Shown: in pieces, positions 35,218-62,687 of the stretch
How the letters are laid out: each line of letters starts with the position of its first letter
Position numbering within the stretch: the stretch's first letter is position 1
Source of the DNA: Podarcis liolepis
Lineage: Eukaryota
Strand: one strand, 5' to 3'
Length of the DNA stretch: 64,000 bases
Assembly: GCA_965112155.1 (NCBI GenBank)
Contig: OZ218106.1
Translations under genes and position numbers: made by a program
Notes under the pieces: model-generated
What the model saw: only the letters and a program-made list of their open reading frames with translations
What the model was told of the DNA's origin: nothing
The model's database searches: none

Positions 35218-36908
35218 GCCAGACCACAAGCGCCACCGGCTGGCCTGCCCCACAGAAGGGGGGCTGAACCCTGAAAGCCCATGACAGACAGCGGCTCACC
35301 TGGCGCGGCACAGCCCTGAACGGTGCAAAGAAGCCAGTTGGCAATGGGCATAAGAAAAGAAGGCTGCTGACCCCCTGCTCCCCCATCCATAGGGGAGCTG
35401 GGACTGAACTGCAGGGCCAACCCCCCCACCTCAAAGCTGTTTTCCTTCCCACAAATGGGAGCATCTGACACGATGGAGAAATTGCGGGGGGGGGGTGTCA
35501 GGAGGAAGGCTGTCTACACCACTCCTGCCTGCCTGCCTGCTCAGGAGCTGCTCCTTCTGCCCCCCTGCACAGCCCCCCCCCCTTTCTGGTGCTGCAGGCT
35601 CCGAGGCCACTTCTTGTTTCCTATATAAAGTTCATGTCTTTTGTCCAACTTGCCTCCCAGCTGATGTGTGAGGAAGGGGCAGCTCAGCTCCAAGACAGGA
35701 AAAGCTCCACCCCCCCGCACCCCCCCAAAGGCCTTTGCATCGCCTGGCCAGAGCCAGCTGCACCTGGGAGGGGGCCAGGTCGGGCAGCCCCTCAGCGTGG
35801 TGGAGGGAAGGGTCCTGTAGCCCCCAAAGGGCCAGGATCACGCGAGATCACAAGACTCTGCAGAATCTGGCCAATGGCCCGGCATCCTGGTCTCACAGTG
35901 GCCAATCGGATGCCCAAAGGGACGCCCACTCATCGTCACGGCAAAGGAGGGCATCAATAATAATCTCCTCCATGAATCTGTCCCTTTCTTGAAAGCCATT
36001 CCAGTTGGTGGCCATCCTGCCTCCTGCGGGAGGGAGTTCCACAGATTCCACCGTGTGACGTCCTTCTACCCGTCCTGAACCTTCCAACATCCAGCTTCTT
36101 GGATGTCCACAATTTTGAGAGAGCAGGAGAAAAACTTCTCTCTCTGCTCTATTTCCCCCTATTAATCTGGGTGGGGCGTCTCAGATGGAGGCAGCCAAGA
36201 AGAAAAAGGGGCATTTAGGACACCCACCCCACCCCACGGGACCCCCCTCCCTTGGCCACTTCAGAGCTATGTGAGAAATGTCCTAATGGAGCCCTGCGGT
36301 CAGTCGGCCGGCCTGGCCTAATTCTCCTGCAAGAGCCCCCCCTCGCCCCCCCTTACTTTCCGTGTCCTGTTTTCCTTCCTGGCTGGGCTGCAGAGAAACA
36401 AATTCCACGGCTGGAGGTGAAAGAGAGGCCTGTCTGGGCAGCCGGTGGTGGCACAGAGGGACTCCCCACCCCTCCCAGTGAGACACAGCCGAGCCCCTCA
36501 AAAGCAAACAGCCCCCCACTCCACCCCCCAAAATTCCTGGGGCTTAGCAAGACCACTTCCAAGGCAAACCACCCCCGGCAGAAATCAGCCCACTTGGGAG
36601 CAAGGACAGCGGCAGAGCAGAAAGGAATCTGTGTCGCCATCGCTAAGCGCTGAGGTGGCACGTCTCTTTGGTCAGGGGGGCGGCTCTTCTGGGCCCACCT
36701 CCAGTAGCCCGCCCTCCCTCCCTCCCTCAGTGCAAGCCTTGTTTTTTGGGGGGGAAGGGAGAGTGCCCCCCCCCGTTCCTCCAGGGCGAGGCAACAGATG
36801 TGCCAGTCCTTTGAGCCGCCCGGGCAGCAGTTGTGAAGCCCCCACCTCAAATGAGGCCAGCAGGAGCCACTGCAGAGCTGCTAAATTAAACACCCTCGAG
36901 CATCCCAT

Positions 36909-36914
36909 AATAAA
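36909..36914 (+). terminator. LOXL3 poly(A) signal AATAAA
   Basis: First canonical AATAAA I found after the LOXL3 stop (~1.7 kb 3'UTR). Confidence 0.6.
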
Positions 36915-36944
36915 GACGAAGCTGCTGCCCCCTTGGCAGAACCC

Positions 36945-36950
36945 TTTATT
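36945..36950 (-). terminator. HTRA2 poly(A) signal (TTTATT on +)
   Basis: AATAAA on the - strand ~800 nt past the HTRA2 stop. Confidence 0.6.
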
Positions 36951-37748
36951 GGAGCAGAAAGGACCAAGCCACAAAGCCCGTCCCCGTCTGATACTGGAGC
37001 AACTCAGGTCACGCTGAGCAGTGGCTGGCTCTGAAGGGTTTAAAAACAACTTTCTAGTCCTTAAGAACCCTGTGGATGGCGCAACCACCAGCTCTCCCAG
37101 CCTCCATTAATTTACCCCACCCTTTATGGCACCCACTGCAGACGGACCCCTCAGGCCCCCCGCTGCCGCCTTGCAGTGGCAAGAGACCCTCCTTAAGGAT
37201 TCCTGATTCACTGCAGCACCGGCTGGGAGCAGAAGGGGCTGCGGATTGGGCCCCGCTGGGCTTGTACCACATGATTCTGAGTTGGGGGGGGGGGGGAATA
37301 GCCAAAGGGACCACCTTGCTGCCAGTTCCCCCCAGAGGGATGGCCACTTGCCCCATGGCTTGGCCTCTTGGCCCCTTTTAAACCAGCTGGGCAAGGGGCT
37401 AACCACAGCCCGCAGCTGGCCTGGCCTTCGATGCCCATTTGCGCAGCACCGCGACAAAGGAGGATGACCCTCCACAAAATGTGGGCCTGGACAGGTCAAT
37501 AGCCAACGGGGAAAGGGGAAAAGGGAAAGTGCTGCCCCCCAAAGGGCCTTTCCTGCCAAGTCAGGGAGAGCCCCAGCTGACATCACACAACCACAGAGGA
37601 GCAAGACCCACCGAAGTGCCACCCGACACCCGCTGGGCCCCCTCCTTCTGTGGGGACAGAGGGCAGGATCAGTCCTCTCCGCGCTCAAGGCAAAGTCCGT
37701 CTTCCTGCCCAGACCCCCAAACGCAGCGGCCACAGCCCCCAACCGCCC

Positions 37749-40700: not shown

Positions 40701-41731
40701 GCTTTGAGTGGAAAAGCTGGTGTGGTGGTGTTTCTACGGTTGGGATCTTCCTTCTCTCCTCCTTCTTGCATCCGGCAGTGGCCACATCACACTGGTCCTG
40801 AGAGATCTGCATTGGCTCTCAGCACGTTCAAAGTGTTGCTGCTGACCTTGAAAGCCCTAAACGGCCCAGTATACCTGAAGGAGCGTCTCCACCCCCATCA
40901 TTCTGCCCGGACACTGAAGTCCAGCACCGGGGGCCTTCTGGCGGTTCCCTCATTGTGAGTAGACAGAGGGCCTTCTCTGTGGTGGCGCCCGCCCTGTGGA
41001 GCACCCTCCCTTCAGATGTGAAGGAAATAAGCAGCTATCCTATCTAAAGGCAGCCCTGTTTAGGGAAGCTTTTAGTATGTAATGCTGTATTGTTTTTAAC
41101 ACTCGATTGGAAGCCGCCCAGAGTGGCTGGGGAAACTCAGCCAGATGGGCGGGGGAGAAATAATAAATCATCATCATCATCACCATCTTCATTCTACCCC
41201 TTTCCCCCGCTTCTCCACTCTTGCTTCCTCGCCCCGATGCTTGGCGCGCTGCCCATGGGAGCCGTCAGCCGCCCGGGCCGGAGTCTCTGCCGGGGGAAAG
41301 GCGACCCCCCCGTTCCCGCCGGCTGCCCGGGCGCCCCGTACCTGCCCAGGATCTCGATGTAGACCAGCGCCGGCGCCGTCCGCTCCACCACGTCGGCGAT
41401 GAAGTTGTAGGTGGCGCGCGGGGAGCCCGGCGGGGGCGGCGAGGGCGAGGAGGGCGAGGGGGGCGGCGAGGGCACGGCGGCCAGCAGCCGAGGGAGGCCC
41501 GGCCAGAGGGAGGCCCGCCCCGCCCCGCCGCCCTCGCCCTCGCCCCGGCCCCGCAGCAGCCACCAGCCCCCCAGCAGCGCCCCCGCCCCCGCCGCCCCTG
41601 CCCAGCGCCACCTCCGAGGAGAAGGAGGGCGCCGCCTCTGCCCGCCGCCGCCGCCGCCCGGCCCCGCCGCCGCCCAGGCGCCCCGGACCCCGCTCCGCAG
41701 CCCCGCCGCCGCCCAGCGCCGCGCCCCCCGA

Positions 41732-41764
<33 letters not shown>

Positions 41765-41766
41765 AT
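37749..41766 (-). CDS. HTRA2: Mitochondrial serine protease HTRA2/Omi, 8 exons, ~432 aa
   Basis: Exons 41766-41342, 40452-40248, 39845-39651, 39423-39391, 38817-38709, 38487-38418, 38181-38086, 37914-37749. IAP-binding AVPS (41478-41467), trimer motif YNFIADVVE, catalytic TNAHVV / DIATIKI / [21 protein letters not shown]. Confidence 0.97.
40790..41185 (+). mobile_element. L2-like LINE 3' end
   Basis: Translates to [27 protein letters not shown]; GCCTTCTCTGTGGTGGCGCCC..GTGGA block; short-repeat (CAT)n tail. A related fragment lies at ~43045-43320. Confidence 0.65.
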
Positions 41767-42620
41767 GCTGCTGGGCCGCCTCGCGGGGCACGCCGGGAAA
41801 CGGAGTCCGGGCGAGCGGGCGGGCGTCGGCGGAAGGGGCGGGGCGTCGGCGTCGGGCGCGGTGACGCACTTCCCCCCGGAGCGGGCGCGACCAAGATGGC
41901 AGCGGCGGCCCGTCAGGCCTCGGCCTTGTCCCGCTGAGCGGCGCCTCCGGACCGCGGGCAGCATGGACGCCTCCGCCGCCTCCGCCGCCCCCGTGGCGCC
42001 CGACCGGCTCTTCGACGCGCACCGGTGAGGGAGGGGGCCCTCCGGGGCGGGGGGCGGGGCGGGGGGGTGCCGGGCCTCCCTGCCTCCCTCTTCCCGGCTC
42101 ACCGGCCTCCTCCTCCTCCTTCTCCCCCCCTCCCCTTCCCTTGCAGGCTCCCCGGCGGCGAGGGCCCTCGCGTGCTGCTCTCGCTGCTGCTCTACGCGCC
42201 GGTGGGGCTGGCGCTGCTGCTGCTGCGCCTCTTCCTGGGGCTGCACGTCTTCCTGGTCAGCTGCGCGCTCCCGGACAGCGCCCCGCGCCGCTTCATCGTG
42301 CGCGTGATGTGCTCGGTGCTGGGCGTGCTCGTGCGCCAGGGAGACCCCCGCCAGCCCAGCCTCCGCGCCCGCGTCTTCGTCGCCAACCACGTCACCCACT
42401 TCGACCACAACGTCCTCAACCTGCTCACCTCCTGCAACGCGGTGAGCCGGGCGGGCCGGGGGGCGGAGGAGGGGGGGCGGCGGGCCGGGGAGCAGCGCCG
42501 GGGGCCGGAGGAGGCACAGCACGCTCCTGGAGCCCGAGGAAGGTGCAGAGGCATCGGTCCGGCCTGCTCAGCCGCCTCCGGGCCTCGCGCAATTCCTCCC
42601 CTTGCTCCAGAGAGAGGCAG
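41200..42620. promoter_or_regulatory. CpG-island bidirectional promoter for HTRA2/AUP1
   Basis: Divergent start codons only ~200 bp apart (41766 on -, 41963 on +). GC box GGGGCGGGG, CRE half-site GTGACG (41861), ETS-like CGGAA and YY1-like CAAGATGGC (41892-41900). Confidence 0.85.
41736..41763 (-). repeat. (GCG)n tract encoding the N-terminal polyalanine of HTRA2
   Basis: CGC/GCC repeat directly after the HTRA2 ATG ([10 protein letters not shown]). Confidence 0.85.
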
Positions 42621-45600
42621 GTCTTGTTAGCGCAGCCTTTGGCAAGGTAGGAAGCACCCGCTGGATCAGCCCCCCCCCCGTGTTCTCCCGGGCACCCACC
42701 AGGTGCCCAAAGCAGGATTTCGGCACCAGAGCCCTGGCCCCTCCTCTGGTTTCTGCCATCCAGAAGTGTTCTTGCATCTGATTGTGAAAGCAGAGCAGAG
42801 CCCTTGTGGTTGGCACAGTGCAGTTCTCTCCTTCTCTTTAAAAACCATCCGGGTTGGTAGCCAGCCCTGGCTCCTGCAGGAGGGAGTTCCATAGTTTAAC
42901 TATGCACTGCATGAAGAACAACTTTATTTTATTCATCCTGATTTTTCCAACTCTCAGCCTTGAATGTGCACCTTTGGGAGTTCACCTTAACGTAATAATC
43001 ACTGCCATTTGTGCGTGTGTGTGATTGTGCGTGTGTTCATGTACACAAGAACAGGCCTTTTCTGTGGTGGCTCCCCATTTGTGAAATGCTCTCTCTAGGG
43101 GTGTTCTGCTGGAACCTTCATTATACACCTTTAGGCGCCAGGTGAAAATGTTCCTCTTCAACCGGGTCTTGGGCTGACTGACCTTTTAAATGTTGTGGAA
43201 TGGGGGGTTATTGGGTTGTCTTTGTTTATGTTTTTATTGTGTGTTTTGTGATTTTTATGTTGTGAACTGCTACAGATATAGGGCAGAATGAAATTTTAAG
43301 AAATAATAATAAATAGTAATGGATACAGTTTCATGCAGCACATCATTTAAACAATGGATTCAGCTCCCACAAGAGTTTGTGCTGGCCACCACCTTGGATG
43401 GCTTTAAAAGTGGATGAGACAACTTCACAGCAGAGGAGCGGGCTCTAGCCCTGATGGCTGCCCCCTGCCTCTGGGGCAGAAGGCAGCACATGCCCTTGAA
43501 TGCTCATGTCCTTGTGGTCCCTGGGGGCTGGCTTCCCCAGGGCTGCAGGTCCCAATCCCCACCAGTGGAGAGCCAGGCAGGCCCTGACGGATTCTCTTCC
43601 CAACAGCCCGTGCTGAACGGCACCTCCGGCTTCATCTGCTGGTCCCGGGGCTTCCTGGAGGTGGGGGGTGCGGAGAGCCGAGCCGAGCTGCTGGAGTCCC
43701 TGAAGGCCTACTCCTCCCAGGGGGGCAACCCGCCCCTGCTGCTCTTCCCCGAGGAGACGACCACCAACGGCCGCGTGGGTCTCCTGCGCTTCAGGTGGGC
43801 AGAGCCTCTGGCCTGGCGCCAGGCACCAGAGAAGATCCCCCGGGATCAGGCCAAGGGCCATCCAGCCCGCAATCTGGTTCTGATTTTGGCTGACCAAGTG
43901 TCTCAGGGGGAAGCCAGCAAACAGCGGGGTGGGGGGAGTCTCCTGCTGAGCGTTGCCCCACTGACTGCACCCTTCCCTCTCCAGCTCATGGCCCTTCTCC
44001 ATCTTGGACAGCGTCCAGCCAGTGGCTCTGCAAGTCCAGAGGCCTTTTGTCGCTGTGGTGAGTGGGGGGGGGGCTGTCTATTTGCTGCTGTAAAGCAGAG
44101 CCCAAAGGAACACCCCCCCAGCAATGGGTGTTTGTGATGGGTGCTTCCTCCCCCATCCCAAGGGCCAGGGCTTGCACTTGCAGCAGCCCCCACCCCTCTT
44201 GGCGTTTTACTCTTTTCTTTCTCCCCCCCCCCCAAGAGTGTGGCTGACGCCTCCTGGGTGACGGAGCTGCTCTGGACGTTCTTTGTGCCCTTCACTGTTT
44301 ATCAAGTAAGGTACTAACAGTCTCTGCTACTTCCTTGCATGGGGGAGGAGGGGGGGGCCTGGACGGAAGGAGAGGAGAGGGGCTCTCAGAGCGGAAGGGA
44401 AGGCAGCCTCTGCTCTTGAGCCCCTCTCTCTGCCAAAGGGGGGAAGTTTGGTCCCTGTTTTGGGGAAGGGGGAGGCAGGTCACCTGGGTAGCCCAGGGCT
44501 TGTCCTCCCCTCTTCCCTTCCTTCCTCCCCAGGTGGCTTCCGCCCATCGGCAGACGAGTTGAAGAAACCCGCGAGGAGTTTGCGCTGCGGGTTCAGGAGG
44601 TAGGAGCAGAGGGCTTGGGGGGGGCGGCATGAAAGACTGACTGGCACGGCCGTGGTCTTGCATGTCCCTCAGTGGTGGGGGGGGGTGTGATGCCCGTGTG
44701 AGACGCTGCCTCTGTCCGCTCAGGCTGTGTCAGAGCCTGGACTGGGGAGCTTCCCAGCTGAGCCCCGGCCTGCGTCTCTCCTCCCTGCAGCTCCTGGCCC
44801 TGGAGCTGGGTGTGGTGTCGACTCGACTCACTGCTGCTGACAAAGCCGAGCACCTGAAGCGATTGCGTCACAGCCCCTCAGCCCCCTACAGCCCCCCAGG
44901 TGAGTGGGGCGGAAGCAGTTCGTCTCCCCTGCCTCCATAGGTCTGCTTGCTGGCAGAGCTCCAAGCCCTGGCTGGCTCCTGCCTGGGCTCTGCCTGCTCC
45001 CAGCTCTCTCCTGGGGGGTGGCGAGGGTCTTGCCCACTCTGCTTAGCAGTGGCTGGCAGGAAGGCAGGGAGGATCCAGGCCACCATGGGGGCTGTGTTCC
45101 CCCCCCCCAGGCCTCTGTGCCTGAGCCGCCCCCTTTCCCCTTGCCTTCCTTTCAGCTCCAAGCCAGCCTTCGGGGTCCCACGACCGAGCTTTCCCCAGTG
45201 TCGCCTCTGCAGAGGATGTCCGCTGGAGTGGCATGGCTCAGCGTGTCAAAGAAGTCCTGCCCCACGTGCCCCTGGCAGTCATCCGCAAGGATCTAGGTGC
45301 GTGGTGGGGGGGGGAGAGAGACTCCCGGGCGGGGGGAGCATTTGGGTAAGAGCTTGAGGGCGGATTCTCATACCCAGGAGGGTTGGGGAGGGCAGTAGAA
45401 ACACAGAATTGCAGCCCTAGGGCAGCCCCCTGCAGTGCAGGCCTTCCAACTGAAGCGCTCCTGAGAGAGGATCAGCCAGCCTGTGGTCAGTGATCTGGTC
45501 TCCTCCTCTCTCTCTTCCAGCTCGGACGAACTGTGTGGATGCGACCATTGCCAATCTCCTGGAGGGGCGGGTTCCCTTCATCCCCAGTGAGGCGGAGGCA

Positions 45601-46086
45601 GAGGATTCCTCGGCTGCCCCGTCCATCTCTGGCGCTCACTACCTCGCCTCTGCTCCCCTGACCCCGGTATCCAACACCCCCCACCCCAAGGAGGAGGGAG
45701 GGAACAGGCGCTGGGGGGCCATGTGGGGGGCTGAAGAGGTGCTGGGGCTTCTCAGGGCTTAGCTCCTGCCCCCTTCCTCCTCCCTCTCTCTGCAGGCCCC
45801 CATGAAGCTCTTTGCCCGGTCCCCAGAGGCAAGGCACATGTCCCTCCAGGAGCGGAAGCGGCTGCTGTACGACTACGCCAGGAGGTGAGGCCGGGACCCT
45901 TTACCTGTTGCAGAGGGAGCAAGGGGTGGACCCCCCCAGCAGTCTCTCTCTGACCCCCCCCCCAGCCCACCCACGCTTGCTCTGGCTGAGCAGCTCTGTG
46001 CCGCCATGTGCTGACGAGGCTCCTCTTGCCTTCGCAGGAGATTCATGGAGAAGCATGGGATGGCGCCAAAGGAGGGGAGCCACTGA
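41963..46086 (+). CDS. AUP1: Lipid droplet / ERAD factor AUP1 (hairpin TM, acyltransferase-like, CUE, G2BR), 11 coding exons, ~430 aa
   Basis: Exons 41963-42024, 42147-42441, 43607-43794, 43985-44057, 44237-44310, 44533-44599, 44791-44899, 45156-45296, 45521-45666, 45796-45884, 46038-46086. Motifs [25 protein letters not shown] (HX4D), [38 protein letters not shown]2[19 protein letters not shown]. Confidence 0.96.
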
Positions 46087-46378
46087 CCGGCTGGTGTTTT
46101 CTTGAGGACTGCTGGCTTGATCAACTCTGGATCTTTGCGGAGGGTGCTGCAGACACTGCCACCCCGCTGGAGCCACGTGGGGTTGGCAGTGTGTCCGTGG
46201 CTGCCCTTGAGTGGTGTGTGCCCATCCCGCCTGACGTTTCCGCAGGGCAAGAGGGAGGCTCCCAGCCCCCACCCTGCCCGCTGCAAGGCCCGGACTCCAC
46301 ATCGCCCTGCCCCACAGCCGGGGCCACCGACGGCCTGCCTCAGAGTGTGGGTGGGAGGGGGCAAGCTTTCACTATCAA

Positions 46379-46384
46379 AATAAA
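46379..46384 (+). terminator. AUP1 poly(A) signal AATAAA
   Basis: AATAAA ~290 nt after the stop. Confidence 0.65.
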
Positions 46385-48675
46385 CGTTACTCTAATTCTC
46401 ATCCTCTCGGACGCGCCTTCCTTCGCTGCTGTGGACTCTGCTTGAGAGGCAGCAGAAGCCCCGCCAAGGGAGACACAACGGGTCCTTGTTCCGCCACCGC
46501 AGCTGCTGCTAGGACGGGCTGGGGGTGGGGCAGGCTGCCTTCCCTCTGGCTCTCCCCTCTGTGCCCTGGCTCCGGAGGGGGTGGCCCCTGAGTCACTCAG
46601 CTGGCGGGCTGAGCTGTCTCCTGCCTCCAGCCAGGTCCTCCTGTCCTGACCCAGCCTGAGCCACACGAAGCTCCACCCCAAGTGCTTTGGAGTGGCTGGT
46701 TTTTGTGTCCTCATCGTCTTGCGTCTCTAATTTCTGTTTCTGTGTGGTGAGAGTCTGCTTTAGCTTTGCGCGCTTTACAGTGGAGGGGCTGCTGGATAGT
46801 GGGGTTGGGGGTGATAGTAGTGTTGGGGGTGATTCTTGCATTGTGAGGGGTGGACTAGATGACTCATGGGCTCCCTTCCCATGCCTGGCGGCCTTTCATA
46901 GCTGCTCTTCGCTTAGCCGGATGGCGGCTTCTTTCCTTTGGTCTCCTTGGGGCGGCAGTCTTGCCGCAAAATTCAGGCACAGCCAGAATGCAGAGCAGGT
47001 GCCCCAAAGGGGACGCCTTTGGATCCTGGAGGAGGGTTGTGGGGCCGCCCTTCTGCTCCCCCCAGAAAAGAAAGCCCAGCCACTGCGTGCTGTTTTCCTT
47101 GAGAGGGGGACCCATTACAGGCAACCTGAGCCTTGAAAATCACATAGGAGTTGAAAGTGGGCGGTTGTCACTCTGTCCAATTGGCTGCCTGTGCTTTGGA
47201 CAAAGGGAACCATCCTGACCACCTGGGGAGGTGGCAGTTCCTGGGGGGGGGGGTCTTAGGCGACCCTGAGGAGGCAAGGGGGCTGCTCCCCACACCTGCC
47301 AGAAACCAGTGGCTGCGAGTGTGGCAGGAGGAACTGCATCCTTGCTGCCTGTATTCTGGGCATCCTTTCGATGAGCGCTTCCTGCATGGGGGGGGGGCGC
47401 TAGACTAGATGTCCCTTGTGGGGGGTCCCCTTCCAGGTCTCTGAATCAGTGGGGCAGCCTAAATTGTTCAGTCGTGAGCAGATGATGCTGCGAGGAGGAG
47501 AGGGGCGAGGAAGGCTGCCCGGGAGACGGGGGCGCGCGGCGCGCTCCGGAGGATGCCGGGCGGGGGCGGGCAGCTGCTCCCTTCTGCTCGGCTGGCGGGG
47601 TCGGCCCAGGTCAGCCTCCTCCTCCCGGGCGGGAGATGCGTGCAGCTCGGCATGTCTGGCTGCGCCCCTCCCGGGCGCGCATTCATTCATGGAGCACGTA
47701 GCCGGCTACTCTTAAAGGGGCGACAGGAGGCGGCGGCCCGGAGTTGCCTCCCTGGCTCCCTCCTTCCGTGGCTCGTGGAAATACCGGCGGGCAGCAGCGC
47801 GAGGCCGAAAGAAACAGCCGGACTAGGACTTCTCTTGATGCAGCCCGGAATAGCATTCGCCCTTTTGGCTGCTGCATCACACCGTGGACTCGCGTGAAGC
47901 TTGTGGTCCGGCCAGACCCCGAGATCCTTTTCACATGCCTGCTAGTAAGCCCGGCGTCCCCCGCCTCGGGGCCGGATTGCGGTTGGATGAGACCCTCAGC
48001 TCCTTCCCTTTATGTGCCCAGCTGTCCGTTGTCAACAACAAATTGTCGTTGTTTTTTGTGTTGAATGCAGTATATGCTGCATGGTAACTTGGGGGGGCCC
48101 AAGAGAGCGGGACCCTAAGCTAGAGCTTCTTTAGCTTATACTTAAATCCGGCGCTGCCCGCCCTATCTTTGTGCGCCTGGTTCTTCCTGCCTAAGCGCAG
48201 AACCTGGCATTTGTCCCTAATGAAATTCATTTTCTTAGCTTGTGCGCAGTTCTCCAATCTGTTCCGGTCATTTTGAATTCTGATTCTGACTCGACGGTGT
48301 GATGTTCAGGAAGCCTTCCCCTCAGAGCCCTAGAATTGCAGAGATGGAAGCACCCAGGGGTCATCTAGTCCAACCCCTGCCAAAGCATCCCTCCTACGAG
48401 GGAGAGACTCCGCTGCTCTTCCTGTCGAAAGACAGAATTTCGTTCCTCAGCCTTTGGATCCAATGGTTCGGGACGGGTTCTCCCTTCCGGAGCAGCTGGA
48501 AATGAGCCGGCTCGGTCTTCCTGGGGCAGCAGCAGCCCGTCCGATATTGGCCTACGGAGCGGCGCCCCTTCCCCTGTCCCTTGCCGGTTGGGGTCCCCAC
48601 CCCTCCCCGGAGCAGGCTGGCGTCGCCCTTTTAAGGTGCCCGGCGCTTCTGTTTACAGAAGGGAGCCGGCTGGGC

Positions 48676-48759: not shown

Positions 48760-51750
48760 ATGGAGGCGCCCCGGGAAGACGCCCTGCAGAGTGAGTGGCC
48801 CTGGGCGGGCGGGCGGGGGGAGGAGAAGCGCGCTCCCGCGCCGGGTCCCTTGAGGGGCCAGACTGGGGTAGGGGCTCTGGGACTCCCCCCCCCCAGCAGC
48901 TGCAGCAGCAGCAGCAGCATCCCCCAGGCGGTGGGGGGATCCAGTTCGGTCCCTCTAACTGCGACTTCCTGCCTGCCTGCCCGCTTCCTAGGCTCCTGGG
49001 TGGAGGTGCCCCCACTTGACCTGGAGGAGCCCCCTACGCCGGCCTGTGCGCCCCACCGCGACATGGAACGGATCCTGCTGGAAGCGCAGCTGGAGGTGGA
49101 GCCGCCGCGGGCCGAGGGGTAGGTGGTCGTGGGCGGGTGACTCCTACGTGGGCAGCGGGGTCGGCGGAACTCCTTGCAACTGGCTGTGAGCGCAGCAGGC
49201 GAAAGGGAGGCTCTGCGGTGGACAAGCGAGCGGCGGCGGCTACCTCCGAAGGGCCGGGAAGCGACGACACCGGGGGGCGGCGGGAGACCAAGCTGGGACT
49301 GCCGGGTCTCGGGTGAGGGGACGGCAGATCAGCCCCTCGGAGTCAGACAGGCGCTACTGGGCATCCCTGGCTCTTCGCCCCTTCCTTGACCCCTGCTCAG
49401 GGCTGCGTACCCAGGGGGCGGCCCACTGCCTGGGGGAGGCCAGCTCTTCCTTCCAAGTCCTCCCGTGAGCCTGACTCGACTCCCCCCCCCCCCGCTATGG
49501 GGCTGCATGTGGGGCTCCTTAGGCTTTCACTGGAGTTGGCATAACTGCGCTCCTAAGCAAATTCCGGTCAGCTCCCGGAATTTAATGCTAGGTAATTATT
49601 GCACAGATGTTCCCTCAGGACTCGCGGTTCTGTTCCCTTCCCTTTGGGGATGCTCTGAAACGTCAAAGTTTGAACCAAATCGCCTCTCCTCTTTGAGATT
49701 TGTATTTCTGAACTTCTCACTGAGAAATTGGAACGTCTGGCTGATTTTCTTTGGGCTCCACCTTGCCACACGAACCTGAGGATGTGAACCCCACATCCTG
49801 ACATTATAAATGCACCAGAGCTGGAAGAATCATGGAATCACAGAATTGTAGAGTTAGAAGGGACCTCCAAGGCCCATCTAGTCCAACCCCCTGAAATGCA
49901 GGAACTCAACAACATGACAGACGCCATCCAATCTCCAAGGAAGGAGACTCCACCGCCTCCCTAGAGAGTCTGTTCCACTGTCAGTTACAGATAGGTAGCC
50001 GTGTTGGTCTGCCATAGTCAAAATAAAAAAAATTCCTTCCAGTAGCACCTCAAAGACCAACTAAGTTAGTTCTTGGTATGAGCTTTTGTGTGCATGCACA
50101 CTTCTTCAGATACACATGTTCCACTGTCCGACAGCTCAGAAAGTTCTTCCTGGGGTTTAGTCACAGGGAGCCTTTGCTGTGTGGGCTCTGGCTTCTACAG
50201 CTGCTCCCCCAGAAAGACCGGCCTGGGAGTGGCCACCAGACGTCTTCCAGGGACTGCCACAGTCAGGACACACAACAGCCCCTGCAAGGATGACCTGGGC
50301 TTCTTCTGTGGGGGGCAAGTCGGCTCCCTTCTCCTGTCTGAGGCAGGGCTCCATTGGCCGGCCTCTTCACCTGCCCAGGAGGCTCCTGCCTTCTGAAGGC
50401 TCACCTGAGCATCCTCACGGGCTGTGGACAGGTCTTGCCTGGTAGAGATTTAGGTCCAGTGAGGGCATCAGCCTCTAAAGGGCTTCACAGCAGCTTCTGA
50501 GCATGCTCACAAACAGCATGGCAGCGAAATCTCTCTTGTGCATGAACACACGGACAGCGAGAGCAATTTCTCACCAGCAGATTCCATTTCTTGTGTTTCC
50601 AGCTCCTTCCTTGCACTGAAGGCGCCTGGTGTGGAGGACCTGAGCCCAGGGCAGGTGAGTGTCAACGCTGAGGTGTGCAAAGGAGCCACCTGGGCCATGG
50701 GCTGTGGTCTTGTAGCCTCAGATTGAGAAGGCGCCAACCAAACTGGGGTCTTGAAAGGTTTCATCTCAGGGGTCATTGTGGTGACTGACCCATGAAGCAC
50801 CTCAAGTTCCATAGACAGGTGTGTTCACACCCACCCACAAGACATGCCCAGATGGTTGCCCAGGTGATATGCCCCCCTTCATCCTTAAAAAAAATTATGG
50901 GATGCTGCACTTTCTCTTTGCAGAGGGAAGACGCTGAAGGGTCTGCCCAGCTGGGGACCCTGCCCTGGTCGTGGCCCAGCCCCCCTGAGCACCAAAAGTA
51001 AGGATGGCTCTTCACTGGCTTTCCCCGGGGGTCCTGGCTTCAGGCAGCCCCCCCCCCAAGACTCTGGCCCCACTGCTTGCTCCACTTTGGACTGACTGTC
51101 TGTCTGTCTCTCTGCAGGGAGCTGGCCTGCCTGCCCCCTGCGTGTGCCCCCCTGCTCAGCCCAGTTCTACACAGGAGGAGGGGGTTGCGGGACCCCCAGC
51201 TGCTGCTTCTGGTCATCCCCTCTCTGCTGCTCAGCCACGTCTTGGCCTTTGGCCTTGGGTGAGTGGGGGGGGGCAACGAACCAGGCACAGTTAGCGCCTG
51301 TCTCACACACAGCAGTGGCCCATCAGCTGAGGAGAAATGGGATCGTGGCAAAACATGGGGACGGGGGTTGATTTTTCTCTCCCTTTACGGAAACACCCTT
51401 AATTCTGCCCAGTGCAGCCAGCCCCCTATAGTGCCTGTCTCCTACCCCCTCCCCTCCAAAACGTCTTGAGACCTGCGGTGAAGTCTCTGAGCACCTGGCT
51501 GGCTGCTGCAGAAGCGGATGCTGGATTAGATGGGTCTCCTCTGGCCTGATCCAGCAGCCTCCTCTCATGTTCTTCTGCTGCTCAGAGCCTTCCCTTGCCT
51601 CTCCCACTTGCCTGGAGGAGCGTAGCAAGAGAGGGGGCTTCTGGCCTGGCCTCTCCTGACCAAGCCCCTCACTCACTGCCCTCTTCCTCTCCTCTCTCCA
51701 GCATTTGCATTGGGAAGCGTCTGGCTGCCTCTCCATCAAGCAGCCTGTGA
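48760..51750 (+). CDS. BNIP3/BNIP3L(NIX)-family paralogue (possibly bnip4-like), 6 exons, 157 aa
   Basis: Exons 48760-48790, 48992-49118, 50603-50654, 50924-50997, 51118-51258, 51702-51750; all GT-AG, phases 1,2,0,2,2, 474 nt in total. Protein: MEAPREDALQSSWVEVPP...DMERILLEAQLE...PWSWPSPPEHQK...VIPSLLLSHVLAFGLGICIGKRLAASPSSSL. This matches BNIP3 SWVEL, DMEKILLDAQHE and [21 protein letters not shown]. Confidence 0.9.
49983..50116 (-). mobile_element. Short Penelope-like element with a minimal hammerhead motif, inserted into a CR1 remnant
   Basis: Perfect 12-bp direct repeat TGTTCCACTGTC at 49971-49982 and 50117-50128; hammerhead-like motif at 50076-50113 (-). Confidence 0.75.
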
Positions 51751-53484: not shown

Positions 53485-54668
53485 AGCCACTGCCTGGGAA
53501 AGGCCCAGGCCCCTGAGATGCCCATGGGGGATGCCAAGCCAGAGGTCAGAAGCCCACGTGGGCCGCGTTCCCTGCCAAGCCCAGGCCAAGCCAAGAGCTC
53601 CAGCAGCCTCACTCTGTTGGGCAAGGAAGAAGTTGGAGGTTCGCGCTCACCCTGAGGGCCTTGCGGGTGCAGAAAGGGACCCTCCCCGATCAAGACTGGC
53701 CATGGCAGATGAGGGCAAGGGGGTTGCCCCCTCCCCTTTAGTTCCTCGGGGCCACCAGAAAGTGTCTCCTCACCCAGGCACTTGCCTCTGGCCCACAGAA
53801 GGACTTGATCCTCGGGCCTATCAACTTCACTGGGTGACGACACCCCATTTTTTTCTAGCAGATGAGACAGAAGGGGAGGAATCTCCCCACTCCAGCTACA
53901 ATTTTAAAAACTGCTGGTTAAATTCCCATGTGGGTCTTTGATTTTACACACTTTGCATCAGTTGTGGCCAAAATATTTCAGAGCTTGAAACAATAAACCC
54001 AAATGTGGGGGGGGTCACTTCCCCAACAGTCAGTATCCTATAATAGAGATCATTGGTTGAACTTTACTGGTGCCCCAATCCGGGTCCTGCGGTGCCCCCT
54101 CCTCTGCCAGGGGACTTGGAACAGCAGCATAGCTAGCCACTCGGGTGGTGGGCACGCCCTGCAGCCAGGGGCAGAGCAGGCCGCCCACGGGGATGGGGCG
54201 AGCTAAGACGGGGCGCGCTGCGCGAACCCTCTCCACAGCCTCCTCTCAACTGTAGGCTGGCTGAGGCGGTGGGCAAACGCAAGCCCTCGAAAAAGCAGCG
54301 TGGAGCTTGCAGGCAGTCCGCCCGCCGCCTCGCCCTCAGGAGAGACGCGTGGCTCAGGCAGGCTGCAGGCCCCCTGGTGTGGCGCCCAGTGCCCCCCACC
54401 TCACCCAGCTATCTGGGCTTCTGCAGTGGCGTAGGAAAGGGCGTGTGGTGGGTGCGGGAGTTATTTTTTGTCACCCCCCTCAGTGATGACACCCGGGGCG
54501 GACCACACCCCCTGCACCCCCCTTCCTAAGCCACAGACTAGGAAGTTACATTGCTGCCAGGGGTGGGGAGGGGCTTGTCCTGATTCTGGGATAAAGCAGC
54601 CTTCCCCCCCCCCCCCCGAAGAAAGACTCTGAAGGAGAAGCAGTTTGAAAACAGGCGCCTCGCAGGAG

Positions 54669-54674
54669 TTTATT
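54669..54674 (-). terminator. Poly(A) signal of the INSYN2-like gene
   Basis: TTTATT on + ~245 nt beyond the stop at 54919. Confidence 0.6.
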
Positions 54675-54918
54675 GAGACCTCCTCAATACAGTGTGTGTC
54701 TTCCCTTCTCTCCTGCCATCTTCATCGAGGGTGGGGGGCTCTGCAAGTTAAACTGGACAGATTTGAACAATAAAAAGGCTGGTGCAATCCCTCCACTCTG
54801 TGGCTCTGTGGCAGGTTGACTGGTGTGGACTGATGGGGGGAGGCAGCCCCCTCACCCCATGGCTCCTTTTCCTCTCCTTGGGGAGGGAGACCCCCGGACC
54901 CTTCTGAGCACGGCACCA

Positions 54919-57900
54919 TCACAGGAACCAGAAACACTTTCGCCGGGACTTCTTGGGCTCCGCTTTCACCACGGGCAGATTCAGCGCTGGCGACGGCTCC
55001 TGGTGGCTCGGCGTGGCAGCTCGCGTGGCCACCGGGGGGCTGTGGCTCAGCTCAGGCTCAATGGTGCTCAGCACCTGCTGCAAACGCCCCTCCTGCTCCC
55101 GGAAATCATGTTCCACGCTGTGGGGAGGCGGGGAGCAAGTCAGAGGGAGGCGTCTCCCAAGGAACCCCACTCAGCCAACGCTAGTGATTGGGGGCAGAGA
55201 TGGGGGTCTGGCTGGGCTGCCCCCATCCCTCCTGGGGGGCCGTGGGAGCTGGTGCAGAGGAGGCAGGTCAGCTGGCAGGAGCCTGGGGAGGCCGCCAATG
55301 GGAGCCCGCCTGCCTCCGCCGACCCTGGCATGTCTCACCCGTCGCCGCAGCGGCAGAGACAGACCCGTCAATCCCAATTAGCACTGAGGCCTTGTGCGAA
55401 CCACACAGGCAGGAGGCCAGAAGGAGCCGGCGGGCGGGCGGGCAGGGAGGGAGAGGAAGGGGGCCCAGTCCTGCCAGGGAGGCTCTGCACAGCCAGCCAG
55501 CCAGACCCCCACCCCCGAAACAGCCTCCGAAGGTCAATGGAAACGTGGGGGGGGGGGGGGACAGACCCAGAGAAAAGGCTCCAAGGAGCAGAGGCTGCCG
55601 GTCTCTCCTTCCTTGGAGGTTTTTAAGCAGAGGTCGGGAGGCCGTCTGCCAGGGATGCTTGCGGGGGGCTGGTCTAGAAGACCCTCAGGGGTCCCTTCCA
55701 ACTCTGCAAGTCTAGGATTCTTTGGTCTGTGGAAGATGTCTTCCTTGTGCCAAACAGCCAGGGCTGGGAGCAAGAGCCCTCTAGGACTCTGATTCTATGG
55801 AACCCAGAGCTCAGCCCCCCTCTGCCCCCGGCAAGGAACTGGCAGAGACACCCGCCTCTCCCTGGGCATGGAGGCCCTTTCACCATCCTGGCTCACAGCC
55901 CTCCTCTAACCCCTCCTTAACAAATGGTCCAGTAGCACCTTAGAGACCAAGTCGGTTTGTTCTGGACAGAAGCTTCTGTGTGCATTCACACTTCTTCAGG
56001 TAGTAGAAAACTTAGACCCAGGACAAACTGAGTTGGTCTCGAAGGTGCTACTGGACAATTCTTTAATTTTTTAATTTATTTTGACTGTGTCAGACCAACA
56101 TGGTTACCTACCCTCCTTAACACCCGCTGAAGCAAGGGGCACCATAGATAGATTGGTGCCCAGGGCTGGGGGGGGGGGCATCCTGGCATCCCTCCCCAGC
56201 TTCAAGGCAGTGGGAGTCATTGGCTGACTCAGAGTCCCAGGACTAAAGCGAGGGAGGGGCAGGGCCAGAGACGCAGCCTCCGTTCTCGTGCCACTGCAGG
56301 GACTCTGTCCTCCTGAGAATCTCCGGCAGGAGGAGACAGGCTGTGGCGGCCTGTCATTCTTCACAGGCATCCTTCATATCACATCTGCAGAAATGCTTGC
56401 CTCCGCTTCCCTCAAGAACTTGATTGGGGCAGGCGGGGGGGCAGGCAGGCATGGGAGCCCTTGCCAGCTCCCTTGGGACTTCTCCAGCACCCAAGACCTC
56501 TGGCAGCCCCCAGGGCACCCTGAACCCAGCCCACCAGCATCCGGCGGGCCACTGCGAGAGCACGATGATGGACTAGGTGGTTCACTGGCCTGATCCAACA
56601 GCCAGACTCTTCTTGTGCCACCCAACTCTATGAATGTATGAAATGTCAGTGTCAAGAACACTGAATCATAGAATTGGGAGTTGGAGGGAGGGGACCTCAG
56701 GGGTCATCTAGTCCAGCCCCCTGCAATGCAGGAATCTCGGCTAAAGCATGCAAGACAGGGGGCCATCCAAGCAAGGGCCCAGGTGTCTCTCAGCCGGACT
56801 TGGGGGGCAGCCTCATCGTCTGCCCCTGTATCTGGTGTTCAGAGGCAGAACACAGCCAATGGGGCTGGTAGCCATTTGCGGCTGTCAGCTCCATGGGTCA
56901 GGACCCTGTGGGGCTGCCCCAGCCTTGCAGTCGTTTCTGGGATATGGTCCAAGCTCCCCACAGGCCCTGCAGAGTCTGCTTCTGCCCCATTGCACCCCCA
57001 TCAAAATCCACTGCCCCTGCAGTGCCAGGGAGCCCCAGGATCAGGCCCAGGGCTCCCTTAGTCCAGCCTCCTGTTCTCCCAGTGACCAGCCACAAGCAGG
57101 ATCCGGGCTCAAGAGCAGCCCTTCCTCCTCCCGCAACTGGCCCTCTGAAGCCTGGCCACCTCCAGCTCTTCAGCCAGAGCCCAAAGCAGAGGCCAAAGCA
57201 GGGAAGGGGCTCTGCTGGAGAAGTGGGTGGTCTGGGGGGGGGGGGGAGAAGGCGAGAGGAAAATCTGCTGGGCAGGGAGGAGAGTGGCTGCCTGAGACCC
57301 AGCAGGACCCCCAGACTGGAAAGCAGCCAAAAGACGAAGGAGCTGGGTGGGCTTAGCCTAAAAGTGGGTTGATGGAGGTGGGGAGATGCTGGCCCTTTGG
57401 GGAGGGGGTCCTCTTCACCCCAGGCCAACGATAGAGCCTTCCCCTCTCTCCAGAGTCCCCTTAGCAGAGTCCCCTTAGCAGAAAGGGGGACCTCCTCAGC
57501 AGAAAACGCAGGATCATCACCTCCATCATACTGAAGAGGCGTACATTTTATGTTGATGTGAAATGTGGAGGTCAGGAGCCGATGTCTGGGCTGCCAGTGG
57601 ATCTGTGGCCGGCAGCCGAGAGCAGACGAGGTGGGGGAAGCCAGGGGGCACCCCCACCCCACCCCCGCTCCCAGGCCCCTCCTACCTGTAGATGATGCAG
57701 GCGCAGTCCCGGCACGTCCCGCAGTTGGTGGTGTCCTGCCCTGTCCGGTAGGACTGCCGCCTGAAACAGAGCAGAAGGAGCCCATGAGCAGAAGGCCCAG
57801 AAGCCGCCTCCCTGCCTGGTCCCAGGGGCCCCCTTTGGTGCCGGGGGGCACAAGCAGCAATGCCCAGAGGGCATCTGGTCAAGCAGCAGGGACCAGGGGG

Positions 57901-60900
57901 AGGGGAAGCATCAGGGCTGGCTTGGGGGGCCAGGAGACCCCCGGGAGGTCTCAGGGAGGGAAGTGCAAGGCAGGCAGCCAGGCAAGGACTCCCTCGGGCC
58001 TCACAGTGCAGAGGCCGCCCCAGGGCAAGGGGGCTGGCCCCACAGTGGCACTGCTTCAGCTTCCAAAGTGAGCAGGCACAGTGCCAGGCGATGCCAAGGC
58101 TGGCTTGTGGCCCGCAGAACCCGCTGCTGCCACCATAAAAACACTCCATCATTTAAAGCGCAGTCAAACCTAAAAGTCGTGTTTTGCTGGACAGCTGAAG
58201 CTCCCAGCATTTCCCTGTGCGTTTGCTGGAGAGAACTCTGTGAGAGACAGTCCCCCGGTGCCCAGGCGGGCAGAGGGCACAGCCATAGATCTCTTCTCCT
58301 TGCCTGCCTGGGCACATGCTCTCGTTTTTGTCTCTTCATCCCCAAGCCAGAAATGGGAGAACACCTGCGAAGTCTGAGCTCTAATGTTCAGACACCATTT
58401 TAAGCTAAGCTGAAGTCTGCCTCTCAGATTGGCTCATTTGGTTGGAGCCTGGTGCTGAAAACAAAGGTCACAGGTTTGATTCCCATGTGGGATAGCTGCA
58501 TATTCCTCCATTGCAGGGGGTTGGACTAGATGACCCTCAGGGTCCCTAGAGGCTCGACAAATTTTGTCTCTGTAACTGAATTACCATTTTAAGCTGCTGT
58601 TATTCTGCCTCAGAAACTCTGAGTAGAACAGGACAGGAAAGTCGGTTTCCAGGTGGAAAAATCAAAATTAGAAACTGAACTGTTAGAACCCAACACTAAG
58701 AATTTATCTAGAATGTACAACTTGTTGTTGAAATGGAACACACAGGATGAAACAGTTAAATCGGCAATGATTAAGTGGGCTCAGGATGTTGGACACAATA
58801 TTATGTCAGCTGACTGGGAATGGTTATGGAACACCGGTATAAAATTTACGGCATGTAATGCCTTAAAGGAAAATATTATGAAAATGGTATACAGGTGGTA
58901 CATGACCCCAGTCAAGCTGGCAAAAATCTATCATTTGCCCGATAACAAATGTTGGAAGTGTAAAGAGACTGAAGGTACCTTTTATCACCTTTGGTGGACA
59001 TGCCCGAAGATTAAGGCCTTCTGGGAAACGATCTATAATGAAATGAAAAAGGTACTTAAATGTACCTTTCCTAAAAAACCAGAGGCCTTTCTCTTGGGCA
59101 TTGTCGGCCAACTGGTGACAAAGAAAGATAGAGCTTTTTTCATGTATGCCACAACAGCAGCAAGAATACTCATCGCAAAGTATTGGAAGACACAAGATTT
59201 ACCCACTTTGGAAGAATGGCAGATGAAAGTGATGGACTATATGACACTGGCCGAGATGACAGGCAGAATCCGTGACCAACGAAAAGAGACGGTGGAAGAA
59301 GAATGGAGAAAATTTAAAAGCTACCTTAAGGACTACTATAAACTTAATGAATGCTAAAATGTCGTGGTTTTCAGAGACAAAGGGGTACAGGGATATAAGG
59401 TTAGACTATAAAAGAGGACTAAGATGATTGAGATTGGAAAGTAACAATTGGGAGTTGCTAGTTGAACTACGGACATTGGGATGCAGAGAGGGGGGGTATG
59501 GGGAAGTCCAAGAAAAGAGGTTTATGAAAATATGTTTGAAACTATACGTGTATGTTTGTCATTTTTAATGTTTGTTTGTTTTTCTTAAAAATGTTGCAAA
59601 ACCAATAAAAATTTTATAAAAAAAAAAAAAAACAGAAACTCTGAGTAGATGTTATTTTTATCTCTTACAAGACTGTTTGTGTGATTATTGTTTTAAAAGG
59701 GGGGAATATCAGGAGAATCCAATCTGCCTTAAAACATCCTAGATTACTTAAACGGAAAGGCTGAAACTAGCCCATCTAAGCAGCAAAAGGGATATCACTC
59801 TGCAGAACTCACAAGTGTGAGGACGAAGAATATCGAATAAATCTAGCCTCTCCTGGCATCTATTCAACACCCCTGGCTCCAAAGGGTCATGGCGGCTCTA
59901 GGCCTGGCCAGTGGGGGCTCCTTGGGCAACCCAGACCCCCCCCAGACCCGCCTCACCCATCTCGCTGCGCCTCCTTCTTCTCCAGATCCTGAATGACATC
60001 CAGTAGCACCTTGATGGTTCGTTGGCTGGTCTCCAGCACCCCCTCGAGGGACTGCAGTTGGGAGTGGATGTCACCCCCCCGCCCGGGGAGGTCCTGAGAG
60101 GCTGGCGGGGGCTCCCTCTGGGCGGCAGCCACAGACACCAGCTGCAGAAGGTGGTCCTGCCCGCGGGGAAACGTCTCCCCGGGTCCGGCGGAGAGACAGG
60201 TCTCAGGGGGGCAGCTGCGACCGGAGGAGGGCAGAAGGGGGTCCGGAGGCTTCTGGGAAGGCGTGGGGGCTGGGGGGTGGGCCTGAGTGGTGCTGAGGCT
60301 CTCTGGGGAGGCCGCAGGCGCTGCTGGTTTTCCTGACTTAGGGGGCCCTGCTGTGGGAAGCAGGAAGGCAGAGGTGGGGTCTTCGGTGGGGGGGCCCTGA
60401 GCAAGGGGGCAGGGGGCAGGGATGCCCCTCTGGGGGGCACAGGGAGGGGCTCTTGAGGCCTGCTCAGAGGGGGGTGGGCACAGCCAGGGGGCGCCAGAGC
60501 TGCTGCAGCTGCTTGGTGTGCCATGGGGCTGCGTGGAGGAGGGGGCACAGTGCTTGCGCTGGGAAGAGCAGCTGGCCGAGAGGCACGGGGCCCCCCGCCC
60601 CGGGTACGGGGGGCATGACCCCCGGGGAGCTGGCAGCCCGGGGCACAGGGTGGCAGGAAGTCTGGGGCACTGCTGGGCATGGGGTAAGGCGAGGGAGCAA
60701 CCAAGGGCAGGAAGGCTGGCGGTGCCCCCCAGGGGCGGATCCTGGCTGCAGCCCACTGCACAGGGCGCCCCCTCCTGGGCGAGGTCGCAGGAGCTCTTGC
60801 TGCGGGGGGGCCGCTGCAGGCTGGGTGACGTCTGGCTGGCGGTGCTGATGCCAGTCGCCCCGTGGGGATCCGGCAGGGCGAGCAGCAGGCGGGGCCCGGA

Positions 60901-61134
60901 TTGGGGCCAGCTCCGCCTGGCGCAGTTTGCGGCAGAGGCACGTGGGGGGTGGCTGCCCGGGGGCTCCTCTTCGCCCTCCTCCAGGTCCTTGAAGCGCACC
61001 TGCTGGGCGCGGTGGCGGCGGCGGCGCTGCAGGCGGTCCTCAGCACCCGGCGAGTCGCGCTTGAGCAGCACGGAGCGGACCCCGGCGACAGCCTTCTCTT
61101 GCCCGGCCTCCGGGGCTGCCTCCTGGCTGGCCAT
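54919..61134 (-). CDS. INSYN2 (FAM196)-family protein, probable third paralogue, 3 coding exons, ~483 aa
   Basis: Exons 61134-59957, 57760-57686, 55117-54919 (phases 2,2); strong Kozak gctgccATGG. Family motifs VRSVLLKRDS, RAQQVRFKD, QTSPSL, coiled coil [65 protein letters not shown] and C-terminal KKSRRKCFWFL. Acceptor at 61556-61555 indicates an upstream non-coding exon. Confidence 0.9.
55923..56110. mobile_element. Penelope-like fragment with internal inversion
   Basis: 12-bp direct repeat CCCTCCTTAACA at 55911-55922 / 56111-56122; 23-bp inverted repeat at 55928-55950 / 56033-56055 (22/23 match). Confidence 0.7.
58428..58548 (+). mobile_element. SINE with tRNA-like head and CR1 tail
   Basis: A-box-like TTGGCTCATTTGGTTGGAGC and B-box-like GGTTTGATTCCC, followed by CR1 tail GGGTTGGACTAGATGACCCTCAGGGTCCC. 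Confidence 0.6.
58628..59632 (+). mobile_element. 5'-truncated L1-clade LINE (ORF2 C-terminus with CCHC finger, 3'UTR, poly(A) tail) with 17-bp TSD
   Basis: Uninterrupted ORF 58653-59357 with CWKC-x8-H-x4-C; AATAAA 59604-59609; A15 at 59618-59632; identical flanking CAGAAACTCTGAGTAGA at 58611-58627 and 59633-59649; AT-rich against the GC-rich host. Confidence 0.93.
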
Positions 61135-62601: not shown

Positions 62602-62602
62602 A

Positions 62603-62686: not shown

Positions 62687-62687
<1 letters not shown>

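Follow-up and report, generated by a model that had tools for sequence, protein, structure and literature searches.

Evidence for an Ancient Third INSYN2/FAM196 Paralogue in the Wall Lizard Podarcis liolepis

Introduction

What is the intact INSYN2/FAM196-type gene that stands free, outside any recognized DOCK gene, in the genome of a wall lizard, and how might it have come to be there? Human INSYN2A and INSYN2B are nested antisense in introns of DOCK1 and DOCK2. The gene considered here lies on the minus strand of a 64,000-nucleotide stretch of Podarcis liolepis contig OZ218106.1 (assembly GCA_965112155.1), referred to herein as the window, which contains no N, and its coding sequence extends from stop to start over positions 54919-61134. 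We propose that it is the wall lizard orthologue of an ancient third INSYN2/FAM196 paralogue, herein termed INSYN2C, which may have outlived a DOCK host and may function at inhibitory synapses, and we give this explanation as a whole, with its inferred history and function, a probability of roughly 0.8. The identity of the gene as a distinct, expressed third INSYN2 paralogue is the part of which we are most confident, and little doubt attaches to it.

Phylogenetic Position of the Lizard Gene

In the alignments, trees and structure model the lizard INSYN2C protein was represented by P0001 of Podarcis muralis, which is 97, 100, and 95% identical to the products of exons 1, 2, and 3 of the window, respectively. 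The proteins closest to INSYN2C are P. muralis LOC114604513 (97%) and "INSYN2B protein-like" entries from Zootoca and Lacerta and, after these lacertids, proteins from other lizards, birds, turtles, sharks, and fishes. A query with the C-terminal 138 aa returned some 100 C-type clusters at 150-304 bits, from lizards, birds (∼55), turtles, caecilians, salamanders, lungfish, gar, paddlefish, chimaera, sharks, rays, and teleosts, and only then the true INSYN2B proteins of teleosts at 133 bits or less. When 1.84 billion representative proteins were searched exhaustively with a profile, only 236 clusters were obtained, and representatives of these were named by means of cluster look-ups and an INSYN2B-profile search.

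An unrooted phylogenetic tree of 58 full-length proteins (IQ-TREE, 485 columns), in which support is expressed as ultrafast bootstrap/Shimodaira-Hasegawa-like approximate likelihood ratio test values (UFboot/SH-aLRT), resolves INSYN2A (clade A), INSYN2B (clade B), the C-type proteins (clade C) and the cyclostome proteins each as a single branch, with support of 100/99, 100/99, 100/99, and 100/96, respectively, and the lizard gene falls in clade C. Clade A, outside of which the lizard gene therefore lies, includes koala, wombat, platypus, ostrich, and teleosts. Clade B contains placentals, a marsupial, platypus, tuatara, gharial, turtles, and birds, together with frog, axolotl, lungfish, coelacanth, chimaera, a ray, and ray-finned fishes. 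Clade C spans sharks, rays, Callorhinchus, gar, paddlefish, teleosts, lungfish, salamanders, caecilians, turtles, birds, and squamates, and its internal order resembles the species tree, with cartilaginous fishes followed by lungfish and ray-finned fishes, amphibians, turtles, birds, and squamates. To judge from this distribution, INSYN2C is a paralogue as old as the jawed vertebrates. The overall topology is ((A, cyclostomes),(B,C)), with support of 87/74 for the inner branch.

Three further results bear on the separation of clades B and C. When six squamate C genes were forced to group with B, the tree was worse by 46 log-likelihood units and was rejected by the approximately unbiased (AU) test (p = 0.0006). 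Each exon of the lizard gene taken alone is nearer to the C-type protein of shark, lungfish or axolotl than to the INSYN2B of tuatara or birds or to any INSYN2A. In addition, B and C genes are found side by side in kiwi, Patagioenas (pigeons), pelican, loon, crane, Emydura, axolotl, lungfish, Callorhinchus, and the stingray Hemitrygon, and ostrich has both an A and a C gene. An initial annotation, made from the window's sequence, had proposed a third paralogue, had called for a phylogeny to examine this, and had itself named a translocated INSYN2B, or DOCK exons on the flanks, as findings that would speak against it. The phylogeny places the lizard gene in a clade extending from cartilaginous fishes to sauropsids and supports the proposal, and a translocated INSYN2B is ruled out by the separate clade, the AU test and the coexistence of B and C.

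Gene Structure and Transcription

The coding sequence, read directly from the window, consists of three exons between an ATG at 61134 and a stop codon ending at 54919 (Table 1), which together encode 483 aa (392 codons, a split Gly codon, 24 codons, a split Ser codon and 65 codons) with no internal stop. Exon 1 encodes the N-terminal family blocks, a disordered middle region rich in Pro, Ser, and Cys, and the beginning of the C-terminal helix, and it ends at a donor GT at 59956-59955 (GTGAGG). The acceptor of exon 2 is a pyrimidine tract followed by CAG and its donor side reads GTAGGA, while CCCCACAG directly precedes exon 3. Upstream of the ATG, exon 1 continues as 5′ untranslated region (UTR), and the RNA contigs take in 59956-60599 plus roughly another 1 kb on the upstream side. 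The leader contains several upstream ATGs, and a splice-acceptor-like context, ctctcttctctctgcag/gt at 61555-61560 on the minus strand, lies 420 nt upstream of the start codon, such that a non-coding exon may precede the first coding exon. Still further upstream, at ∼62560-62700, is a (GA)n-type microsatellite that appears as RERERE and SLSLSL in translations of open reading frames (ORFs).

Transcription was assessed with RNA contigs from three runs, from three studies, of a close relative (organism A) mapped on 54600-60599. Each run yielded one contig in which both splice joints fall exactly at the predicted borders, and the CT..AC ends of these joints correspond to GT..AG introns on the minus strand. 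One mRNA-like contig of 2142 nt comprises the 3′ UTR, all three exons and about 1 kb past position 60599. The contig ends lie ∼20-50 nt beyond the AATAAA signal, and in a second relative the single-cell RNA reads on INSYN2C are confined to a pile at its 3′ end. Among the pieces that map on exons, contig depth is greatest for the spliced form. Hence INSYN2C is an intact protein-coding gene that is transcribed, correctly spliced, and polyadenylated. Other contigs (X1 records 2 and 7, depth 11-32) read from exon 2 (57732-58523) and from exon 1 (59645-59985) into intron 1, and they represent either pre-mRNA or isoforms with a retained intron. If exon 2 were read through, the protein would terminate at ...CACIIYR*, as in the annotated "X2" isoforms of INSYN2B in lungfish and Callorhinchus.

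Both introns contain repeats. In intron 1, the plus strand of 58653-59357 holds an open frame of 234 aa, in an AT-rich patch (GC 0.44), that resembles the C-terminal part of ORF2 of long interspersed nuclear elements (LINEs) and for which no match was found in Pfam. The surrounding 58.4-59.6 kb is a high-copy transcribed repeat, as RNA contigs and single-cell reads are very deep there and carry many variants. Intron 2 has high-copy repeats at 55600-56200 and 56600-56800, where contig depth is in the thousands, and the RNA contigs contain many false "joints" between 55.63 and 58.5 kb, and therefore one repeat family has copies in both introns.

By its sequence, the lizard gene is a member of the INSYN2/FAM196 family. 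The exons were searched singly against Pfam and proteins, and family PF15265 (FAM196; gathering cut-off 27 bits, profile length 489) matches all three above the cut-off and colinearly along the profile, with 59.5 bits for exon 1 (profile 366-403), 36 bits for exon 2 (407-428), and 38 bits for exon 3 (431-489). The N-terminal blocks VRSVLLKRDSP..QQVRFKDL and TSPSLQ are present in the translation of exon 1 and align with 22 family members through P0001, and the tail KKSRRKCFWFL is at the C-terminus. With its open frame, a family match on every exon and these blocks, the gene is as intact and complete as had first been annotated. It also has the family's exon pattern, with a 75-nt penultimate coding exon that ends ...ACIIY and has split codons on both sides, and in other species the same borders appear in isoforms of both INSYN2A and INSYN2B. 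In lungfish and Callorhinchus, the INSYN2B isoforms that read through diverge immediately after ...ACIIY, as does that of the INSYN2A-like gene of Denticeps, and isoform X2 of axolotl INSYN2B omits exactly this 25-codon exon.

Table 1. Features of the INSYN2C gene and of the neighboring genes in the 64-kb window.
Feature	Position	Strand	Details
INSYN2C exon 1, coding part	59957..61134	-	ATG 61134; 392 codons + 2 nt; Pfam PF15265, 5.6e-16
INSYN2C intron 1	57761..59956	-	2196 nt, GT..AG; RNA joint 57759/60-59956, CT..AC, in X1, X5, X10
INSYN2C exon 2	57686..57760	-	75 nt; Cys-rich block; split Gly/Ser codons at edges; Pfam 7.4e-9
INSYN2C intron 2	55118..57685	-	2568 nt, GT..AG; RNA joint 55117-57686, CT..AC, in X1, X5, X10
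INSYN2C exon 3, coding part	54919..55117	-	Ends KKSRRKCFWFL + stop TGA 54921-54919; Pfam 1.8e-9, up to profile end
INSYN2C 3′ UTR	54640..54918	-	AATAAA at 54674-54669; RNA contig ends ∼54640-54700
Synteny block DOK1(-)/LOXL3(+)/HTRA2(-)/AUP1(+)	15868..47000	mixed	Domains, solved-structure matches, motifs
DOK1-type PTB exons	15.9-17.6 kb	-	Pfam IRS; best solved relative docking protein 1, ahead of DOK2
LOXL3	23.9-33.9 kb	+	Four SRCR exons + lysyl-oxidase motif
HTRA2		-	AVPS motif in exon 1, TNAHV and GNSGGPL exons; best solved-structure match HTRA2, 106 bits vs 81 for HTRA1
AUP1		+	Head to head with HTRA2 at ∼42.0 kb; identified by motifs
BNIP3-like gene	48900..51300	+	Motifs GSWVEV...DMERILLEAQLE and transmembrane exon ...LLLLVIPSLLLSHVLAFGLG

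Genomic Locus and Origin

The order of the block DOK1-LOXL3-HTRA2-AUP1 in the window is that of human 2p13.1. As described by Wotton et al. (2008, PMC2446394), the human LBX2/TLX2 locus (TLX2-DQX1-AUP1-HTRA-LOXL3-DOK1) is one of four paralogons, the others being LBX1/TLX1 on 10q (LOXL4), TLX3 on 5q35 (DOK3, DOCK2) and the former LBX4 on 8p21 (LOXL2, DOK2), and among them the Lbx2 and Lbx3 paralogons are sisters. By its gene content the window is the LBX2/TLX2 paralogon, the counterpart of human 2p13.1, in agreement with the 2p13 synteny of the initial annotation. INSYN2A and DOCK1 share a 500-kb interval of 10q26 (PMC11840842) and INSYN2B is located at the DOCK2 locus of the TLX3 paralogon (PMC2446394 for DOCK2 on that paralogon), a setting that the lizard gene does not share, its neighbors being DOK1, LOXL3, HTRA2, and AUP1. 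The gene nearest to it is the BNIP3-like gene, which it was correctly said to abut; the two are convergent, tail to tail, with ∼3.4 kb between their coding ends.

Within the 64-kb window no DOCK exon was recognized by Pfam and ORF reading, a result obtained without direct comparison against a DOCK protein, and other genes fill the window; this agrees with what had first been noted and leaves INSYN2C without DOCK exons at its flanks. Likewise, no Pfam match was obtained for ORFs in the 2.9 kb upstream of INSYN2C or in the spacer toward the BNIP3-like gene (ten ORFs). As far as the window extends, INSYN2C is therefore not inside an intron of the DOCK1/2/5 type and is free-standing.

These observations can be considered in light of the two rounds of vertebrate whole-genome duplication (2R). 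Clade C is present in both cartilaginous and bony vertebrates, B and C or A and C genes occur as pairs in the same species, and the block in the window is paralogous to the DOCK1/INSYN2A region as well as to the DOCK2/TLX3 region with INSYN2B. A third INSYN2 gene on a paralogon without a known INSYN2 or DOCK gene is therefore what an ohnologue would look like, and the unrooted topology ((A, cyclostomes),(B,C)) is compatible with the sister relationship of the Lbx2 and Lbx3 paralogons (PMC2446394). We propose that the ancestor of INSYN2 was nested antisense in the ancestor of the DOCK-A genes and that the pair passed together through both duplications. Host and guest would both have been retained at 10q26 (DOCK1/INSYN2A) and 5q35 (DOCK2/INSYN2B), the host alone at 8p21 (DOCK5), where the guest would have been lost, and the guest alone on the LBX2/TLX2 paralogon, where INSYN2C would have persisted without its host for ∼450 million years before being lost in mammals. 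This DOCK-host history assumes that the nesting is older than the duplications, and we regard it as evenly balanced between true and false.

The proposed loss in mammals is supported, not proven, by the distribution of the predicted proteins. Among the C-type clusters from the protein searches, with the profile search covered to the best 150 of its 236 clusters, there is no mammal, frog, crocodilian or coelacanth. C-type representatives without a species name most resemble those of birds, sharks, teleosts, gar-like fishes or iguanian-like lizards.

The alternative that best survives is that clade C is real and goes back to a small-scale event in an early jawed vertebrate, in which INSYN2A or INSYN2B was duplicated or transposed, in which case INSYN2C would never have had a DOCK host. 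Such an origin would account for a locus with no DOCK remnant; the tree, being unrooted, does not speak against it, and we know of no fourth DOCK-A gene in any vertebrate. It would leave unexplained, however, why the gene resides on the only member of the LBX/TLX tetrad without a known INSYN2, in the company of a third BNIP3-family gene and of DOK, LOXL, and HTRA paralogues. The introns have been retained, so the gene is no retrocopy, and the unrooted topology fits the sister Lbx2/Lbx3 paralogons (PMC2446394). On balance we consider a small-scale origin unlikely and prefer the 2R origin of INSYN2C.

Some features of the neighboring genes may be mentioned here. At the exon level, Pfam gave no match for AUP1, for the exons of the BNIP3-like gene or for the first exon of HTRA2, and AUP1, for which no solved-structure relative was found, and the BNIP3-like gene were identified by motifs instead. 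Exon 1 of HTRA2 keeps the AVPS motif for binding inhibitor of apoptosis proteins. The BNIP3-like gene, although from an unrelated family, has the same pattern as INSYN2C in that it is an extra ohnologue of a 10q26/8p21 family kept in non-mammals on the 2p13-like paralogon.

Constraint and Alternative Identities

The evolutionary rate of INSYN2C differs greatly along its length. Over the C-terminal 138 aa, identity is 91-93% among lacertids, 76% with turtle and bird and 64-66% with sharks, and the middle region can hardly be aligned. It could be argued that the lizard gene is a decaying or non-functional copy, transcribed without constraint on its protein, given that the lacertid proteins are the shortest in clade C (482-510 aa compared with ∼600-640 in birds and turtles), that their middle region is very divergent and rich in GC and Pro, and that intron sequence is kept in some contigs (X1 records 2 and 7). 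Against this, the 483-codon frame is intact over three exons and the splice sites are canonical, the N-terminal blocks persist along with the conserved C-terminus, and the deepest contigs on the exons are those of the spliced form, all of which makes decay very improbable. A pseudogene is ruled out by the intact frame, the spliced transcript and the conserved C-terminus, and a retrocopy by the presence of introns.

The least probable identity, to which we attach next to no weight, is that of a lizard INSYN2B relocated out of the DOCK2 intron, which is suggested by database names on C-type genes ("INSYN2B protein isoform X2 [Anolis carolinensis]" and many "INSYN2B protein-like" entries) and by the lack of any squamate among the best 120 of 1021 INSYN2B-profile matches, but is contradicted by the 100/99 separation of B and C, by the AU rejection of squamate C with B, by the coexistence of both genes in birds, turtle, axolotl, lungfish, chimaera, and ray, by the greater proximity of all three exons to shark and lungfish C than to tuatara and bird B, and by a locus on the LBX2/TLX2 rather than the TLX3/DOCK2 paralogon. 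The family-typical intron positions, the placement in clade C and the AU rejection thus show that INSYN2C is not a retrocopy and not an INSYN2B that has moved. The same 120 matches comprise mammals, birds, turtles, gharial, and tuatara, and the INSYN2B of squamates is either fast-evolving or missing.

The relationship of INSYN2C to its two paralogues can be summarized as follows. With INSYN2A it shares PF15265, the N-terminal blocks (MVSK..., QVRFKD, TSP.L.K), the C-terminal helix and Cys-rich ...DF block, and the exon border after ...ACIIY, but INSYN2A forms a separate clade (100/99) and resides in the DOCK1 region of 10q26, whereas INSYN2C stands free, with AUP1 and the BNIP3-like gene next to it. 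The tail of mammalian INSYN2A (...RWRLWFL) lacks the Cys found in that of INSYN2C (...RKCFWFL), and a synaptic role has been demonstrated for only one of the proteins, mammalian INSYN2A (InSyn2). INSYN2B has in common with INSYN2C the family, the three-part coding structure, the skippable 25-codon exon and a similar tail (KKKCFWW[IL]); it differs in its clade, union with which is rejected by the AU test, in its location at the DOCK2 locus, and in its Cys-rich block (NCSTCQ.TAC...SVEYDF compared with ...SVEHDF in INSYN2C). INSYN2B is also slow-evolving in sauropsids, with branch lengths of 0.05-0.15, whereas the squamate C genes are fast (0.35-0.73).

Predicted Structure and Proposed Function

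An AlphaFold2 model of P0001, built from a 23-sequence alignment, has a predicted local distance difference test score (pLDDT) below 50 in 300 of its 482 residues, and INSYN2C is thus predicted to be a mostly disordered protein rich in Pro, Ser, and Cys. The modeled order is confined to a long helix at 351-390 (pLDDT 77-81), a Cys-rich turn, a second helix at 406-440, and a short terminal helix over KKSRRKCFWFL. The INSYN2B model of tuatara in the protein atlas is likewise disordered (predicted template modeling score, pTM, 0.20), and the comparison with the atlas confirmed the family at a level that does not resolve taxa. The conserved parts of INSYN2C are the short basic N-terminal block, the TSPSLQ block and the C-terminal module of ∼135 aa, which consists of the long helix, the Cys-rich turn, the second helix, and the polybasic-Cys-aromatic tail.

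The literature on mammalian INSYN2A suggests what such a protein might do. InSyn2, a highly enriched component of the inhibitory postsynaptic density discovered by BioID (PMC10913824; PMC11840842, citing Uezu 2016), has been discussed as a candidate scaffold there (PMC10913824), and INSYN2A is reported to regulate postsynaptic inhibition (PMC11840842, citing Uezu 2016). By analogy, INSYN2C could resemble INSYN2A in acting at this density as a disordered scaffold or adaptor, in which the C-terminal helical module would serve in oligomerization or partner binding and the basic-Cys-aromatic tail may serve in membrane association. We consider this synaptic role possible, at somewhat below even odds. 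The combined proposal, in which the host-guest pair was dismantled in a complementary manner after 2R and INSYN2C is an inhibitory-synapse scaffold of non-mammals that is absent in mammals, is similarly tentative and a little more likely to be wrong than right.

Several points weigh against the explanation as a whole. The N-terminal two thirds of INSYN2C evolve rapidly, with only 35-48% identity to turtle, bird and other lizards, and therefore the function of INSYN2C may have drifted from that of INSYN2A. A synaptic role of the C-type proteins is proposed from homology with INSYN2A, and the RNA support concerns transcription and splicing rather than neuronal expression. As there is no trace of a DOCK host at this locus, the idea that INSYN2C outlived its host is without direct support. 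The absence of INSYN2C from mammals, frogs, crocodilians, and coelacanth is taken from databases of predicted proteins that are incomplete, and the tree, being unrooted, gives no order for the INSYN2 duplications.

Nomenclature and Implications

INSYN2C is already predicted in the public annotations of many genomes under inconsistent names. The genes predicted automatically in NCBI and UniProt for birds, turtles, lizards, sharks, and fishes as "INSYN2B protein-like," "inhibitory synaptic factor 2A-like" or uncharacterized LOC entries are INSYN2C orthologues, and C-type proteins are also found as "basic proline-rich protein-like," "formin-like protein 20," and "mucin-2." Among the papers listed from the searchable literature, none treats a third INSYN2/FAM196 paralogue, and neither INSYN2C nor FAM196C was found there as a name. 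Names such as "INSYN2B" on the Anolis gene are misleading where function is transferred by orthology. Studies of the inhibitory synapse in zebrafish, chicken, axolotl, and lizards have an extra family member to consider that has no mammalian counterpart and that may provide redundancy in knock-outs. If the host-guest explanation is true, INSYN2C would be an inhibitory-synapse scaffold present in non-mammalian vertebrates and absent from mammals. The locus is a clean case for the fate of nested genes and their hosts after whole-genome duplication. INSYN2C is, at the same time, one more of the many known ohnologues lost in mammals, and the result is a sound gene-family finding rather than a new kind of biology.

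Two further lineages were seen in teleosts. About 24 clusters (P0197-P0266), found in teleosts only and named "mucin-like," contain proteins of up to 1331 aa that carry the FAM196 C-terminal module and form a long branch beside the INSYN2B of ray-finned fishes in the C-terminal tree, and these are probably a fast-evolving teleost insyn2b duplicate. Within clade C itself, teleosts have a divergent second lineage represented by P0162, P0175, and P0196.

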